Below, one piece after another: positions 21,454 through 39,810 of a DNA stretch of 64,000 nucleotides. The notes under the pieces are model-generated. The model did not search any database, was not told where the DNA came from, and saw only the letters and a program-made list of their open reading frames with translations. The position numbers and the translations under genes are program-made. This DNA comes from Lepidodermella squamata (taxonomy: Eukaryota > Animalia > Gastrotricha), in NCBI GenBank assembly GCA_047495785.1, contig JBLDXI010000054.1, positions 3,410,001 through 3,474,000 on the forward strand, read 5' to 3'. Each line of letters opens with the position of its first letter. Positions within the stretch are counted from its first letter, which is position 1.

Positions 21454-24400
21454 TCACGACGGCACGGCAGTTTTTGGAACACTCCAGGTATCATATTTTG
21501 GTTGGTCAAACAGCAGCGGCTTTCTTTTAGGCTTCTGTTGCAAGCCGTCAGCTCTATACATCAGCTTTATCACTCCAGTTCCAATAGCCGATGGCCGACC
21601 TAGAATGACGGATTCGGACACGCCCTTCAACGCATCTGCCTGTCCATGGAAAGACGCCTCGAACAAATGGTCCGTGGTGCGCTCGAATGACGCCAGCATC
21701 AGCACTGATTGCTTCAAGCGAGCCAACCCAATTCGCGTAATGCCGAGAACCTCGCCACGAACAGTCATAAGATCAGCAAGCAACTCAACGTGCCTGAAAA
21801 TGAACAATGCAAATTAGTATGAATTAAAAAAAATATTCTCACCTTCGGTCGATTGACATGCCGTGATTAGCCATTGTGTCGTTGATTTCATGGGCAATAG
21901 TAGCTCGCGCTGCTTCGATACCCAATCGTTTCCAAACCGCAACAATGCTGTTGGACGAAACCTTTGTGGCGGCGACGCCAGGAGTGGCTATTACACCCAT
22001 CAGATCGTCACCTTCGACGAATAGACGGAAACGCTTTCCTGTCTTTTGATCAGCCTCAATAACGACACGACCTGCCGATGCCAAACCGCATACCGTGACA
22101 TTGGGTAGCTCAGTCCGCAACATATGCATAGCACCAGCCAACCCGCCTTTACTGCCTGGGTCAGGGTAAACTGCGACCATGCACTCGGAAAACACGCGAA
22201 CGGTTTGAGGCCTGACGTGCAGTTGGCGCGTTGATTGCGCTCGTTGAATGGCCATTGCGACAGAGGACGCAGTGAGGCGAAGCCTTAACAGCGCCATTCG
22301 AGCCAAATCAAGCCGCAGTAGAATGAAACACTCGTGCGGCCGGTAGACATCATCAATCGACTCGCAAATATCAGCCAATCGCGTCTTTTCAATGCGGGCT
22401 TTCACAACACGCGCGAATTCCTGGTCTTCCGGCTTCTCCAGCTCAGCCGTTATGATAGGGGTTGAAATTGTCTTGTTGGCATTGATAATTTCCTTCAGAC
22501 GGGGAACACCGAGGGTGATGTTCATCGAAGCAACACCGGCAAAGTGGAAAGTTTTCAGCGTCATTTGGGTACCAGGCTCGCCAATCGACTGGGCGCAAAT
22601 TGCACCGACCGTTGTCCCTGGCTCAACGCACGCCTTCTGCCAGCGATTAGCGCATTCATTCAAGAAGGCCAGCAGTTGAATTTCAGTCAGGCGTCGCACG
22701 TGGTTAACCACCTTCAGTTGATGCAGGGAGATTTCTTGGGCGAACATAGCGCGGATTTTGTCGACTTTATCAGCAAAGCCGTGCAAGAATTTTTCGACCT
22801 CTTCTCGGAATACAACATCAGTCGCAGCTTTCGACTTCCACTGCGTTTTCGCACTCACGCTTTTATCTTTCTGTTCGACAAACCAGGCGTCTATAATTGC
22901 TTTAATTTCAGACCCGGATAAAGCTGGACTGCCCTTGCTCGGGTGAATAGCACAGGTGTGTTGCAGAAGGCGGGTGTAATCGACTGGGCTGGTTGTTTCA
23001 ATTGTCAGCGGGTCGAGTCCGTCTCCGCCATAGATGAATTGGACAATCTCACTATCCGAATTCCGCACAGTTCCATCGTAACTGAGGACAAGGTCCTCAA
23101 GTGATTTGACCAAACGACGTTGCATGTAACCAGTTTCCGCAGTTTTGACAGCAGTATCGACCAGGCCTTCTCGCCCGCCCATGGCGTGGAAAATGAATTC
23201 GTAAGGCGTGAGGCCGGTGTAGAAACTGTTGGCAACGAAACCCTTGGCTTCGGGTGAGCGGTCTCCGCGCCTGAAATGGGGCAGGGATCGCTGGGTAAAA
23301 CCATCCGGCACTCGCTTGCCGGACAAGGCCTGTTGCCCGACACACGCCACCATTTGAGAAATGTTGATAGTGGAACCTTTCGAACCAGAAAGTGCCATGA
23401 TGAGCGGGGCGTTAGTTGGCGGCAGTTCTCGAAGACACGCTTTACCTAGAAAGAGAAACCAAGATTTGAATGAGTATTCCAAGTGCCTAGCCTAATTAGG
23501 GTTCCAAGGCTAAATTGGAGGCTTCAGCGCTAAATTTTCCCAAAATATGGTTTTTCGAGTTTCACGTATTCCCTTTCTACAAATCACTGATTTTCCCGAT
23601 ATCAGCAGTCTTTGAGGCCAAAATAGGAAATGGCTCTTTCTAGCTATGGTAACAGTTAACCAAAATAAAGTCGCAGGATCATGGACAGCATCGATCAAGT
23701 AATTTAGCGCCAGCACGCTTAATTTTAGTCGTGCAAATATTATTTTAACCTGATTTAAATCTAAATTTTAAAATGATGTGAATATCAAACCTGCGTGGTC
23801 TCGAATAGCAGAGAGTTCTCTCAAGATCACCGCCTCCAGCGTTTGATCTGGGGTGCAACCAGCTTGCGTTTGAAGCCGACCGGCTTTCAGATCGTCGATG
23901 TACTGCGCGCACTTGGCATAGCCATCAGCTACCAACTGCTTTTTCACCGCAGTCAGGACTTTTCCTGGCGTTACATCACCAATACCAATCGACATGCCGT
24001 AGTGGGTGAGGAAGGCGGGTGCAAGACGAGCGACACGGGTGAGGTAGATAACAGCGGCCGGTGGGCCGAAATCACGCACCAGAACGTAGACGAAAGACGA
24101 TTTAGAGCCAGATCCTAGCGATGATTTGTCAAGTCGGCCAGCCATTAGCTCAGAATTAACCATCACAACAAAACCGTCATTTGAGCACAGCTCCTCATCT
24201 TTGCCCGAGTAATTTTTGGTCTTAGCCCGGAGGTTCAGATTGATGCTTGATTTACTCGAGGGTTTAATGGTTAGTGAAAAGATCTGTTTTCCAGTCCACA
24301 GGCAAACAGGGCGCAGAATACTTGGCGGCGGCAATTCAATGCGAGCATTCGGTTCGTCCCATCGCATTAAGGAGGCTGCCAATTGCATAGCTTGAGCACG

Positions 24401-26201
24401 GTCGAGGAACGTATCTCGAGCAGTTAAGAGGTAAGTAGCCGTGATGAAGTCCTGAATAGCAGCAGTGAGCGGTTCGCCGTTCCTCGGGGTCAAAATGTTT
24501 TCAGACGACGCCAACAACGTAGCAGCTTCGGCGCGGGCCTCCTGCGTCTGAGGAACGTGAATATTCATTTCATCACCGTCGAAATCCGCATTGAAAGGCG
24601 TGCAACAACTTTCATTGAAACGGAACGTTCTATACGGCAGGACTCGAATTTTGAACGCCTGAATCGATAAGCGATGCAGCGACGGTTGGCGGTTGAAAAG
24701 AACGATGTCGCCGTCTTTAAGGTGGCGTTCGACAATATCACCATTTTGCAGCTCCTCAGCCATTTGCTTCCGATTTCCGTACCGCAAAAACTTCTTCGCT
24801 TCATTCGTATTTCGCGGCTGGATGAAATTCGCGCCAGGATGGCAGTCACCACCATTTATGACGAGCTGCTGGAGCATTTTCCGATTAGCGTTGTTCACAC
24901 ATTCGGGAAACGTGAGAATTTTAGCGACCTCGATTGGAATTGCAATTTGATCGATTCGCATGTTAGGATCTGGGGAAATTACGGTTCTTCCCGAAAAATC
25001 GACACGCTTCCCTGATAGATTGCCTCGGAAACGCCCGTGCTTGCCCTTCAAACGCTGGCAAAAGCCTCGCATCCACTTTTTCGGCTGCATGCTAGCCGGA
25101 ATGCCAGAGGTTTGACTGTTGTAGAGTAAAGCGACCTGCAGCTGCAAGAAATCCCAATCTTCGGCGATCAAGCCCATTTTGGCACCGGTTTCTTTGTGCT
25201 TTTGGATAACATCATTGAGCAGCAAAATTTCGGTCAGCTTCATGGTGATATCGTCCTCGGTTGTACCGGATTTAATGTCTGACGTCACTGATGGGCGAAT
25301 GCACACAGGTGGAACAAGAATTCGCGTCAAAATCATCGATTCTGGACGACTGACTTCATTTGACATGAGCAGAAGAGGAATGTCTTTTTCGGGAATCCGA
25401 CGGAAAATTTCCAAAACAATTAGTGGATTCAAGTTTTCCTATTGAAATTCGGATTGTGTTGATGTATAGAGCTAGCTATAAAGTAACTTACCACGCCACG
25501 TAGACAGGATGCGTTTGTTGATTCTACTGCGACGACTTCCTTGTTAGCAGCCGCTGCAGCCGCCGCTGCTTTTCCTTTCGGTTTCGGTATCAAAGCAGCG
25601 CTGTCCAGTAAGTGGCCAAGCTGAAGTAGACTGGTTTTACGGACAACGCCGTTGAGCTGGTGGCAATGCGGGCATTCGGTGATTTTTGAAGCCGGCGGTT
25701 TGCATCGTTCATAGATTCGTTTTCGAATACTCTTGCGTTGCAAGTAGCTCAATCCAGGCCGTCGTAGTAGGGCCGTGAAATTGCGGCACTCTTCATCTGA
25801 GAGCAGAATTCGGCTGCAAAACTTGCAGACCGAATTCAGAACTTGTTGAATAGCCGTAAAATAGCCGATGTGGAAGACAGGGAGCTGCAAATCGATGTAA
25901 CCATAATGGCCCGGGCAGTCAGCCAATTGCAAGCCACAAGTTTCACACGTTTTGTCCTTACTGCAAACACCCTGGTTTAAAGAAAGCTATAGCCTCGAAA
26001 CCTTTCAAGTTATGAATTAAATACCATTCTGATATCAAGGACACCATAAGGAGCTGGTTGGTTCTTCCCATCCTGGGTGTACAAGTTCTTCGATACGACC
26101 TGAACACTCGACTGCTGTCGCATTTCCTCGGCCGTGAAAATGCCAAACGTGACGCCGACGACTTGCTTCGACGTATCCACCGACCGGAACTGTTCTTTCA
26201 T
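21454..26201 (-). CDS. POLR3A: RNA polymerase III largest subunit RPC1, 5 exons
   Basis: MKEQFRSVD.., [40 protein letters not shown], catalytic [38 protein letters not shown] and [16 protein letters not shown]. No CTD heptads. Confidence 0.97.
23525..23712. repeat. Short inverted repeat (GCGCTAAATT...AATTTAGCGC) inside the enlarged POLR3A intron; possible small MITE
   Basis: 10-bp perfect inverted ends at ~23527-23536 and 23701-23710, within a ~345 bp intron where typical introns are ~50 bp. Confidence 0.35.
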
Positions 26202-36033: not shown

Positions 36034-38567
36034 TCAATCAGCCCAATAACAGGGCGTCAACTCCATATCCGGAAAATTGCTCATAGCAGCCTTTGTAGCT
36101 TGCTGTGCCAGAGAATGACCGGCCCAGGCACGACGAGCCACTCCATTGATGACATCCCATTGCAGCATAGACGTAGCTTTATCATGCGCCTCGCGACTTC
36201 CATCAAGCACCAAACCGAATCCTCCATTCATAACCTCGCCCCAGCCAACGCCGCCGCCGTTGTGAATTGAAACCCAGGTGGCGCCTCGGAACGAATCACC
36301 GATAACATTTTGAATAGCCATATCAGCGCAAAACTTGGAACCATCTTGAATATGCGAAGTTTCGCGGTATGGCGAATCCGTCCCTGAAACGTCGTGGTGA
36401 TCACGGCTCAGGACAACAGGGGCGCTAATGCGACCATCGGCAATAGCTGCGTTGAAAATTTGGGCAAGTTTCTGACGGCCAAGCAAGTCGCTGTAAAGAA
36501 TACGAGCTTTGGAACCAACAACCAGCTTGTTATGAGGGGCTTTGACAATCCAATCCAAGTTATCGCGATATTGCTGACGAGTTTCGTCAGACAAACTCCC
36601 GTCATTCGTCATTTTTTCGAATAAATCAGCCGCCAGTTTGTCAGTTAAAGCAAGGTCCTCATCTAAACCTGAGGTACAGACCCAGCGGAAAGGTCCGAAA
36701 CCAAGCGAGAAAACATCTCCCATTATGTCCTCGACATAAGACGGATAGCGGAATTTCGTTTTACTTCCTTCTGCGAAGACATCGGCTCCGGCACGGGATG
36801 CTTGAAGTAGGAACGCATTTCCGTAGTCCCAAAAATGCATTTTCGCATTTTCAGCCAAATAATTCACAGCGGCAACATGTCGCAGCAAACTTTCGTGAAC
36901 TTTCCGTTTGAATAGATCAGGCTCATCGACCATCATTCTACGAGCGTCATCGTAACTAACACCAACCGGATAATAACCACCTTAAAATCGAACAATTCAT
37001 GGTATACTCCAGGTACTTGAGCGGTTTTTTTTACCGTAATACGGGTTGTGTAAAGAGGTTTGATCTGATCCTAATTCCACCAAAACCTCACCAGTTTTCT
37101 TGTGTTCAGCCACGAAACACTCCCTATAGAAATTAATTAGCATTTTCAGAGAAAATATATCGAAATATTGTACCATAAGTCAACAATATTGCCGTGATAG
37201 CCGATGCTAACGGCTTCTCGTTTAGCTTTCGCTTCTCTCATTCGTGACATAACCTTGTTAAGATCACTGTGCCATTCACTCAACCAGCCCTGCGAGTGTC
37301 GTTTGGTGATCGCTTCGAGCGACACTTCTGCAATGACGCCGACACAGCCAGCAATAACAGCAGCTTTCGCCTGGGCGCCAGACATGCCGCCCATACCAGA
37401 GGTAACAAAAGCTACCCCTCCGACATCTTCTCGGTTCAAATATTTACGACCCGCACTTTTCACTGTGATCTGTAGCAATAAAACATGAAAAATATACTCC
37501 AAAATTTCCTGAAGCGGTTATAATGTACCGTTGTTCCGTGAACTATACCCTGAGGGCCGATATAGCAATAGCTCCCAGCAGTCATTTGGCCGTACATAGT
37601 CACACCCATAGCAAAAAACTTGTCATAATCTTCATTTTTGCTATAATTGGGAATCATCATGCCGTTCGTAATAATTGCCCTTGGTGCAGCGGTTGAGCTG
37701 GGAAATAAGCCCATCGGATGACCAGAATACATGACCAGTGTCTGAGAATCAGTCATTTTCGACAAATAGTGCATCACCAATCGAAACTGGGCCCAGTTAC
37801 TGAACACTTGGCCATTCCCACCATAAGTAACCAACTCTTGCGGGAACTGAGCCACGGCCGGGTCCAAGTTGTTGAAAATCATTAGCATAATAGCTTTAGC
37901 TTGCACACTTATGCCCGGAAACCACGAGATTGGGTAAGCTCTGTGAAAGAGTGGGCACGAATAATTTTACGTGTCCAGCTGTTACTGGAGAGGAAAAAAC
38001 ACATACTTGAGAGGTATATCAGGCATGAAACGGTACATGTAAATATGGCCGTGTTGTTCCAACTCTTCTGCAAACTCAGACGCCAAAACATCGTGAAGCT
38101 CGGGTCGGAAATACCGCAACGCGTTTCTCACGCACAACTGATAAATAACACAAGATGCAATTAACCCCTATGACACTAAAGCCACATAAAAATCTGTCTA
38201 GGCTACATTGAAGGAATCAGATTGAAAACTACCGTGTCATAAACATCGCAGCAAAGAACACCGCCGAGCACAAGCAGCGCTGAAATATTGCGTTAACAAC
38301 AAATCTTCACCACAGATGCTCAAGGCTGTGTTCAGCTGGATGCCTCAGAGATACAGAGACTCTCATCATATTAGTCTTCAGAGCAAATGAAAATAAAATA
38401 AAATACATTCAAGTAACCTTTTTCTCTTCATCCGTTAAATTGGGACGACGGCGAGGTGCATGAGGCAAATTTGGAGATGGAACTCTTTTCGCCCCCAGGC
38501 CCAACACAGTTTGGGGCAGTCCCGAGCTTAGTAATTCCAGGGCCGCCTTAATTTCGCTCTCTGTCAT
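36034..38567 (-). CDS. UROC1: Urocanate hydratase (eukaryotic long type), multi-exon
   Basis: LPHAPRRRPNL, VRNALRYF, GHIYMYRFMP, NNLDPAVAQFPQELVTYGGNGQVFSNWAQF, GQMTAGSYCYIGPQGIVHGT, SDQTSLHNP, FWDYGNAF, SRDHHDVSGTDSP and HNGGGVGWGE. Confidence 0.97.
38210..38380 (-). ncRNA. Intronic box C/D scaRNA-like guide RNA (U4-A65 guide plus a U6-complementary guide) in UROC1 intron 1
   Basis: C box ATGATGA at 38369-38363, D' CTGA at 38348-38345, D CTGA at 38220-38217, with terminal TGAAG/CTTCA pairing and a long internal hairpin at 38256-38333. There are 10-nt antisense elements to U4 (AUUGAAAACU, 38221-38230) and U6 (GAUACAGAGA, 38350-38359). Confidence 0.8.
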
Positions 38568-38946: not shown

Positions 38947-39810
38947 TCAAGAAGCAGTTTTCAAAAATGCTATCAACTGCTGTGTTTGAAGCACAAGAAC
39001 CAAGGCGCTAATATAAACGGGTTCTTTTTTGTTAACTCGAAAGAACAGCTTCAATTGCTGGCTGAAGTTTTTAGATTGTCTGACGAATTCTTTCTTGTGT
39101 TGATCCAGGCACTAAAACCAATAAAAATAGTTGATATTTAACAATAAATAAATAAGTTTTCCTTACAATTCGACTGCGCTCAGAAGGTAATGACGCTCGG
39201 ATATCCGTCATAGATTGCAAAAAGTCCCTTATCGCTCCAGCAATATCCCTGGTGTAGCTTTGATTAACACAAATTCATAAAACAATGAAAAAGTCTTACT
39301 TTATGACTTCTAGAAATTTCTTTCGATCAGATATTTCATCTGGAATCCTGCCCAGCTTTTTTGTGAGCATTAACGAACGTTCGTTGATATCAAAATATAG
39401 AGGTTCATTCTTCCGAACAAGAAATTCTGAATGATAGTATAGAATATAGAATAATATGAAATCAACATTTATGTTGCATCCCTACCGTCTGAGCTCAGAT
39501 GGGCTTCGAGCCGGAGAAACGCTTCACTCAACTCTGATTGCTTGCTTTCAAGACCGGTCATTACCATCAAATTACGAACGAAAGCTAGATGAAAACCAGG
39601 ATGCTCTTGCTCAACCTGTTTCAGGGCGTCCATGACGCTTCGAGTAGAAGAGGAGCTGATCTGAAGCTAGAACAAGCATAAAGTATAATTGGAAAAGAAT
39701 TGATTTTATTTGCGACTTACTTTTTCGAGAACTGGAGCAAATAATGTAGGATAAGCTAGAGCCCGCATAAGCTCTTCGTCATCCACATTCTGAGCGATGG
39801 TCTCAGCCAT
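38947..39810 (-). CDS. PDCD10: Programmed cell death protein 10 (CCM3), 5 exons, ~210 aa; not in the ORF track
   Basis: Manual splicing gives MAETIAQNVDDEELMRALAYPTLFAPVLEK|..KQVEQEHPGF..EAFLRL..|..LGRIPDEISDRKKFLEVIK|DIAGAIRDFL..|CLDQHKKEFVRQSKNFSQQLKLFF..VYISALVLVLQT. This is colinear with PDCD10 ([39 protein letters not shown]). Confidence 0.92.

Follow-up and report, generated by a model that had tools for sequence, protein, structure and literature searches.

A predicted intronic box C/D RNA with guides for U4 A65 and U6 A41 in the urocanase gene of a gastrotrich

In vertebrates, the guide RNA SCARNA5 (U87) combines a guide for A65 of the U4 small nuclear RNA (snRNA) with one for U41 of U5. 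U6 reads the 5' splice site through its ACAGAGA box, whose known modifications (N6-methyladenosine at position 43, m6A43; 2'-O-methyladenosine at 47, Am47; pseudouridine at 40, Psi40) are few and closely studied. Here we describe a predicted box C/D RNA in a 64,000-nucleotide (nt) stretch of DNA from the gastrotrich Lepidodermella squamata (contig JBLDXI010000054.1, positions 3,410,001 to 3,474,000), referred to below as the window. The RNA lies in the first intron of a urocanase gene and would address both U4 A65 and A41 of U6 (human numbering). Drosophila mgU4-65 (scaRNA:MeU4-A65), a confirmed WDR79-bound small Cajal body-specific RNA (scaRNA) whose target is U4 A65 (PMC3884663), is likewise a box C/D guide that places A65 at +5, and the window RNA shares with C/D scaRNAs a length that is considerable for a C/D RNA and an internal hairpin. 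It differs from mgU4-65 and SCARNA5 in having no detectable sequence homology to them, Rfam giving no match for it, and from mgU4-65 in that the Drosophila-type Cajal body (CAB) box cgaGUUAnUg is not conserved between the window RNA and its counterpart in a related species. Its second guide addresses U6, unlike that of SCARNA5, which addresses U5 U41. Guides for 2'-O-methylated nucleotides (Nm) of U6 are known in human (PMC5855946), Drosophila (mgU6-47 and mgU6-68; PMC3884663), S. pombe and Arabidopsis (PMC8053127). Those of the mgU6-47/SNORD7 type are box C/D guides that pair with the ACAGAGA region, but they select the last A of the box, human A47 (which we take to be A41 of S. pombe), whereas the window RNA selects the first A, six nt upstream, and carries a U4 guide as well. 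The guide RNA pugU6-40 targets the U6 nucleotide adjoining A41 and illustrates that no strict line divides guides for U6 from those for RNA polymerase II (Pol II) snRNAs (PMC3884663), although it is an H/ACA pseudouridylation guide and not a box C/D methylation guide. Two functional guides in one C/D RNA are found in mgU12-22/U4-8 (PMC4041459) and mgU2-25/61, which are independently transcribed and capped (PMC4041459), whereas the window RNA is intronic. The pair of targets predicted here, U4 T-loop and U6 ACAGAGA, was not found in the literature that we examined. Of the original prediction for this locus, made from its letters, that a single RNA serving U4 and U6 may be undescribed, this combination of targets stands, whereas the guiding of two snRNAs is itself not new, given SCARNA5.

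The predicted RNA (Table 1) has an RUGAUGA C box near its 5' end, a CUGA D box near its 3' end and a 5-base-pair (bp) terminal stem, and both guides and their boxes lie at canonical spacing, with the D guide at +1 to +10 and the D' guide at +2 to +11. The D' box is a perfect and conserved CUGA; the C' box is degenerate, reading UUAUGA here and CUGUGA in the relative, with the 3' UGA alone in common. Degenerate C' boxes are common. The whole RNA folds at -67.2 kcal/mol with a z-score of -5.3, and the helices GAACAC/GUGUUC and GAGCAU/GUGCUC are both present in the minimum-free-energy fold of the internal hairpin. In minimum-free-energy folds, the CACGGU spacer pairs through its ACGG with the CUGU of the D' guide. 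The host is a urocanase (UROC1-like) gene on the minus strand with the domains Urocanase_N, Urocanase and Urocanase_C. In a transcriptome contig, position 38137 is joined to 38418, so that 280 nt bounded by GT..AG on the minus strand are removed; the following intron in the same contig measures 66 nt, making intron 1 about four times longer, and the orthologous intron 1 of the relative is also long (221 nt). The original prediction had placed box C/D motifs and a long hairpin within a UROC1 intron 1 of about 280 bp. All of these motifs are present, on the minus strand, and the spliced contig confirms the intron; together, the architecture, the spliced intron and the guide conservation described below back the claim of an intronic double-guide box C/D RNA.

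Chance occurrence of such an arrangement was assessed by scanning both strands of the window for a C box, a D' box at guide distance, a D box and a terminal stem of at least 5 bp. This locus alone was returned, against 0.05 per shuffled window. The string of D guide plus box was counted once in the window, where 0.05 are expected, and that of D' guide plus box once, where 0.02 are expected. A comparison with Rfam, proposed as a check along with the original prediction, was run at gathering thresholds and matched no family on the window, on the relative's contig L003 or on a metagenome contig described below (L006). Matches to the archaeal families sR14 and sR3 over the segment from C box to D' (E up to 10) were rejected as noise.

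Targets were read on human U4 and U6 as given in PMC13253345, with positions counted by hand. The D guide is complementary to U4 A61-U70 (AUUGAAAACU) in 10 of 10 pairs at +1 to +10, placing A65 at +5, and the D' guide to U6 G38-A47 (GAUACAGAGA) in 10 of 10 pairs at +2 to +11, placing at +5 the nucleotide A41, which is the first A of the ACAGAGA box. The 61-70 region of U4 is its T-loop, which spans n.63-70 (PMC13253345), and 10 bp is the duplex length that fits the channel of the C/D ribonucleoprotein (RNP) (PMC8053127). Both of these +5 assignments had been made in the original prediction, and the counts behind them are correct on the human sequences. We take A67 of Arabidopsis U4 to be the equivalent of A65. 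That nucleotide carries the single Nm of Arabidopsis U4 (PMC8053127). The eight Nm sites of human U6 are A47, A53, G54, C60, C62, C63, A70 and C77, and A41 is not among them (PMC5855946). The original prediction did not recognize A41 as an Nm site either, and its absence from the human map agrees with this. Counted on an Arabidopsis U6 sequence, human A41 presumably matches none of the sites in that plant. Those sites include U27, A43, A48, C57, C63, A65 and G75 (PMC8053127). The surroundings of the ACAGAGA box are reachable for guide RNPs, as seen in human Am47 (PMC5855946) and in Drosophila mgU6-47 and the H/ACA scaRNA pugU6-40 (PMC3884663). Since Drosophila has a scaRNA for U6 Psi40 whereas its mgU6-47 and mgU6-68 are nucleolar (PMC3884663), guide RNPs evidently reach this region and the division between scaRNAs and small nucleolar RNAs (snoRNAs) is not strict for U6. 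The predicted U6 target site is probably novel.

The evidence that carries these assignments comes from a comparison with one relative species, represented by contigs L003-L005, a urocanase (P0151) and an Rgp1 protein (P0271). A search with the open reading frame (ORF) of the last urocanase exon yielded P0151 as one clear relative, at 77 % protein identity; the other matches, at 66 % or less, were a mixture of bacteria and assorted animals. Rgp1, a second gene, is 63 % identical between both species, and at these two levels of protein identity neutral sites should therefore be saturated. The contigs of the relative retain the upstream neighbour gene, and the locus is therefore orthologous. Its intron 1 (L003 4710-4930, 221 nt) holds, in order, AUGAUGU-UAU-UCUCUGUAUC-U-CUGA, a hairpin of about 60 nt, and CUGUGA-CACGGU-AGUUUUCAAU-CUGA. 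Here the C box reads AUGAUGU (L003 4746-4752), the D' guide is identical at L003 4756-4765 within a 16-nt exact block, and the D guide is identical at L003 4841-4850. Long exact matches between the introns amount to three blocks only, namely TCTCTGTATCTCTGAG (16 nt), TGACACGGTAGTTTTCAATCTGATT (25 nt; window 38239-38215, L003 4832-4856) and ACTAATATG (9 nt), the last of which lies close to the C box on its 5' side; no exact match longer than 12 nt arose in 500 shuffles. The remainder of the intron cannot be aligned, and this includes the sequence and length of the hairpin, which in the relative is about half as long and unrelated in sequence, though in the same place and with a z-score of -6.2. 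The terminal stem is also kept in the relative with other sequence, as a long external stem. The original prediction had left conservation of the guides in an orthologous UROC1 intron to be checked, and both proved letter-for-letter identical. Both predicted guides, that for U6 as well as that for U4, are under purifying selection, because they are identical in a distant relative while flanks and hairpin have diverged; both stretches are probably in use, because this identity holds to the letter.

A second haplotype, seen in the DNA run X3 over 38330-38460, differs from the window by 11 substitutions and one 1-nt insertion. The RNA core is spared by the insertion and by ten of the substitutions, which lie in exon 1, in the upstream intron and in the 5' flank, bases of the terminal stem among them, and none of the changes touches the C box, the D' guide or the D' box. 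Six substitutions in the 5' flank replace UGAAG/CUUCA by a register-shifted AUUGAG/UUCAAU (6 bp; window 38376-38384 and 38207-38213), such that the terminal stem is retained through different pairs. The eleventh substitution, G to U, is at +12. Positions +12 to +14 read GAG, GAU and UAU in the three sequences, with U at +12 in two of them, where it can pair with U6 A48 in addition. The start of the conserved D' block coincides exactly with that of the U6 complementarity.

Judged by its sequence, the predicted element is a genuine double-guide box C/D RNA, intronic and conserved, and we put at roughly 60 % the probability that intron 1 of the urocanase gene encodes such an RNA with guides for methylation of both U4 A65 and U6 A41. 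The architecture, the intronic position and the strict conservation of the guides are the observations on which this estimate is based. From them we infer a stable RNA, its assembly into an RNP, both methylations and canonical U4 and U6 target sequences in this species. The RNA would be released from the spliced intron, its C/D and C'/D' motifs would assemble the Snu13/Nop56/Nop58/fibrillarin core, and the internal hairpin would draw D' and C' together. The D guide would pair with U4 T-loop nt 61-70, with fibrillarin 2'-O-methylating A65 through the C'/D unit as for Drosophila mgU4-65, and the D' guide would pair with U6 nt 38-47 (38-48 in the relative and the second haplotype), presenting A41 at +5 for 2'-O-methylation through the C/D' unit. 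The two targets belong to one functional module, and their modification could be coupled.

Several points weigh against this reading. The RNA data, poly(A) or assembled contigs, show the spliced messenger RNA (mRNA), and the stable RNA is a prediction; the C' box is degenerate in both species (UUAUGA and CUGUGA); just one relative species enters the comparison; and complementarity was judged on human U4 and U6. The CACGGU spacer (L003 4835-4840 in the relative) is perfectly conserved, so part of the conservation has a cause beyond the 10-bp guide duplex. Methylation at U6 A41 is unreported in the human (PMC5855946) and Arabidopsis (PMC8053127) maps, and in our literature term searches A41 of S. 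pombe was the only U6 guide or site with a name that refers to this position. It was rejected as the same site: it is the target of the mgU6-47 gene, and we take it as the equivalent of human A47. As for the spacer, the 25-nt identical block around it exceeds what a guide duplex needs; its conservation could possibly reflect extra pairing with the U4 of this lineage, or intramolecular pairing with the CUGU of the U6 guide.

A first alternative, which we hold to be unlikely, is a plain U4-A65 guide in which the D' element owes its conservation to another GAUACAGAGA-containing RNA (ribosomal RNA, rRNA; another snRNA; or an mRNA) or to a structural or intramolecular role, the complementarity to U6 then being a coincidence. 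This would accommodate a spacer that is equally conserved and has no obvious target, the pairing of its ACGG with the CUGU of the D' guide in the folds, and the absence of A41 methylation from the human and Arabidopsis maps; the target comparison, moreover, covered human U4 and U6. However, we estimate that about 650 nt of snRNA would contain a perfect match to the 10-mer with a probability of about 0.003, and about 6 kb of rRNA a second copy of it with one of about 0.006; the conserved block, moreover, has the same start and end as the U6 complementarity. Two of the three sequences have a U, able to pair with U6 A48, at the variable position +12, and the duplex, of canonical length (10 bp) and register, precedes a perfect CUGA. 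The same register and length, exactly those for methylation, together with the perfect D' box, stand against a second alternative, in which the D' element binds U6 without methylating it. Such an RNA would act as a chaperone or bridge that could keep the U4 T-loop and the ACAGAGA box together while U4/U6 assembles or is recycled, or could shield A41-A43 from other modifying activities, for instance those that make m6A43 or Psi40. It would draw on guides that address cooperating elements, the U4 T-loop and stem III positioning the U6 ACAGAGA box (PMC13253345), on a degenerate C' box that could weaken catalysis at D', and on the lack of Nm at U6 A41 in the human (PMC5855946) and Arabidopsis (PMC8053127) maps; but non-methylating C/D chaperones are few, such as U3 and U14, and we regard this alternative as quite unlikely. 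That there is no functional RNA at all, the intronic sequence being conserved for splicing or transcriptional regulation of urocanase or being a decaying snoRNA relic, would suit the lack of an Rfam match, the expression of the element being a prediction, but is very improbable because of the conservation pattern, which is limited to boxes and guides with hairpin and terminal stem kept despite sequence change, and is opposed too by an architecture found once in the window against 0.05 by chance and by an intron about four times its 66-nt neighbour and long in the relative (221 nt).

A more far-reaching reading can also be proposed, which we hold to be unlikely as it stands: the first A of the U6 ACAGAGA box would be 2'-O-methylated in this lineage by a guide coupled in one RNP to the U4 A65 guide. 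This RNP would bind both strands of the module by which ACAGAGA is positioned, and its substrate might be the assembled U4/U6 di-snRNP, or it might assist in the assembly. The conserved guide directed to this first A predicts one more modification site in U6. The human U4 T-loop helps to position ACAGAGA and carries the variants of ReNU syndrome, including n.65A>G at the methylated A65 (PMC13253345), and a single RNA addressing both T-loop and ACAGAGA hints at coordinated modification of the two. The locus also adds a candidate U4-A65 guide from a poorly sampled bilaterian lineage.

The original prediction had further described the RNA as scaRNA-like, noting the resemblance of the GUUA at the hairpin apex to the Drosophila C/D CAB box. 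The Drosophila C/D consensus is the 10-nt cgaGUUAnUg (PMC4041459). The apical GUUA (38297-38294) matches only its 4-nt core and final g, and in the minimum-free-energy fold the G and first U are in closing pairs, the loop being UAAC. Neither GUUA nor a G.U/U.G wobble (GU-repeat) stem occurs in the hairpin of the relative, and no Cajal-body localization element was found among the Drosophila-type and vertebrate elements compared, which may not be those of this lineage. The predicted target U4 is a Pol II snRNA, as expected for a scaRNA. With a CAB-type GUUA that is not kept in the relative, assignment as a scaRNA is not supported; the missing element lowers that claim and not the claim of snRNA methylation guiding. 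Judged from this locus, conservation of the Drosophila-type CAB motif does not extend through this lineage.

Table 1. Features of the predicted box C/D RNA and its host exons (positions in the window; RNA letters in the sense of the minus strand)
Feature	Position	Strand	Description	Basis
Urocanase exon 1	ORF 38409-38567	-		ORF reading and spliced contig
Urocanase intron 1	38138..38417	-	280 nt; RNA host	Spliced transcriptome contig
Urocanase exon 2	38007-38137	-		ORF reading and spliced contig
Predicted box C/D RNA including terminal stem	38209..38380	-	about 172 nt	Sequence reading, fold, architecture scan
Terminal stem, 5' half	38376..38380	-	UGAAG; pairs with CUUCA 38213-38209 (5 bp); followed by ACUAAU	
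C box	38363..38369	-	AUGAUGA; followed by spacer GAG	
D' guide	38350..38359	-	UCUCUGUAUC (10 nt); followed by a single U at 38349	
D' box	38345..38348	-	CUGA; conserved in relative	
Internal hairpin	38243..38344	-	-48.2 kcal/mol alone	Minimum-free-energy fold
C'-like box	38237..38242	-	UUAUGA; degenerate	Sequence reading and relative
Spacer	38231..38236	-	CACGGU; between C' and D guide; fully conserved	
D guide	38221..38230	-	AGUUUUCAAU (10 nt); directly abuts D box	
D box	38217..38220	-	CUGA; conserved in relative; followed by UUC	
Terminal stem, 3' half	38209..38213	-	CUUCA; pairs with UGAAG 38380-38376	

Other searches for relatives were also conducted. A representative protein search returned nothing above 66 % identity over any long stretch; its best full-length matches were rejected as relatives, P0001 being a protist-like metagenome contig and P0004 a bacterium. 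Two ORFs of 304-305 amino acids (P0229 and P0270), considered as exon ORFs of relatives, proved to be frameshifted bacterial genes of Bacteroidota type. Apart from a lamprey protein at 28 %, the Rgp1 search led back to the relative already described and to nothing else. A metagenome scan anchored on the U4 guide returned no further orthologue, its yield being chance bacterial matches and one element in about ten near-identical contigs (L006 8318-8340, minus strand; L008, L011, L012, L018, L019, L022, L023, L025 and L026), which from their record names we take to be termite-gut metagenomes, probably host DNA. This element reads GUGACAC-UUC-AGUUUUCAAU-CUGA at an apparent intron start; it has no canonical C box upstream, no U6 guide and a fold z-score of only -0.5, and its identity as a C/D RNA is not established. 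It could be a U4-A65 guide of an insect, or the match may be due to chance.

In the surroundings of the locus, the gene upstream of urocanase (39469-39633, minus strand) is kept in sequence and position in the relative (L003 3539-3697), where MDALKQVEQEHPGFHL... corresponds to MEALKKVELDHPGFHL..., and Pfam had no match on record for the called product of this gene in the relative. Large exons of RPC1, the largest subunit of RNA polymerase III, lie at 21842-25432 on the minus strand, and the best named matches of the RPC1 exon, at about 65 % identity, are from a land snail, a bryozoan and vertebrates. A spliced urocanase mRNA about 95 % identical to window 38007-38139 (94 of 100 aligned letters) was present in a poly(A) metatranscriptome labelled freshwater (X2), which suggests that the organism or a close relative lives in fresh water.

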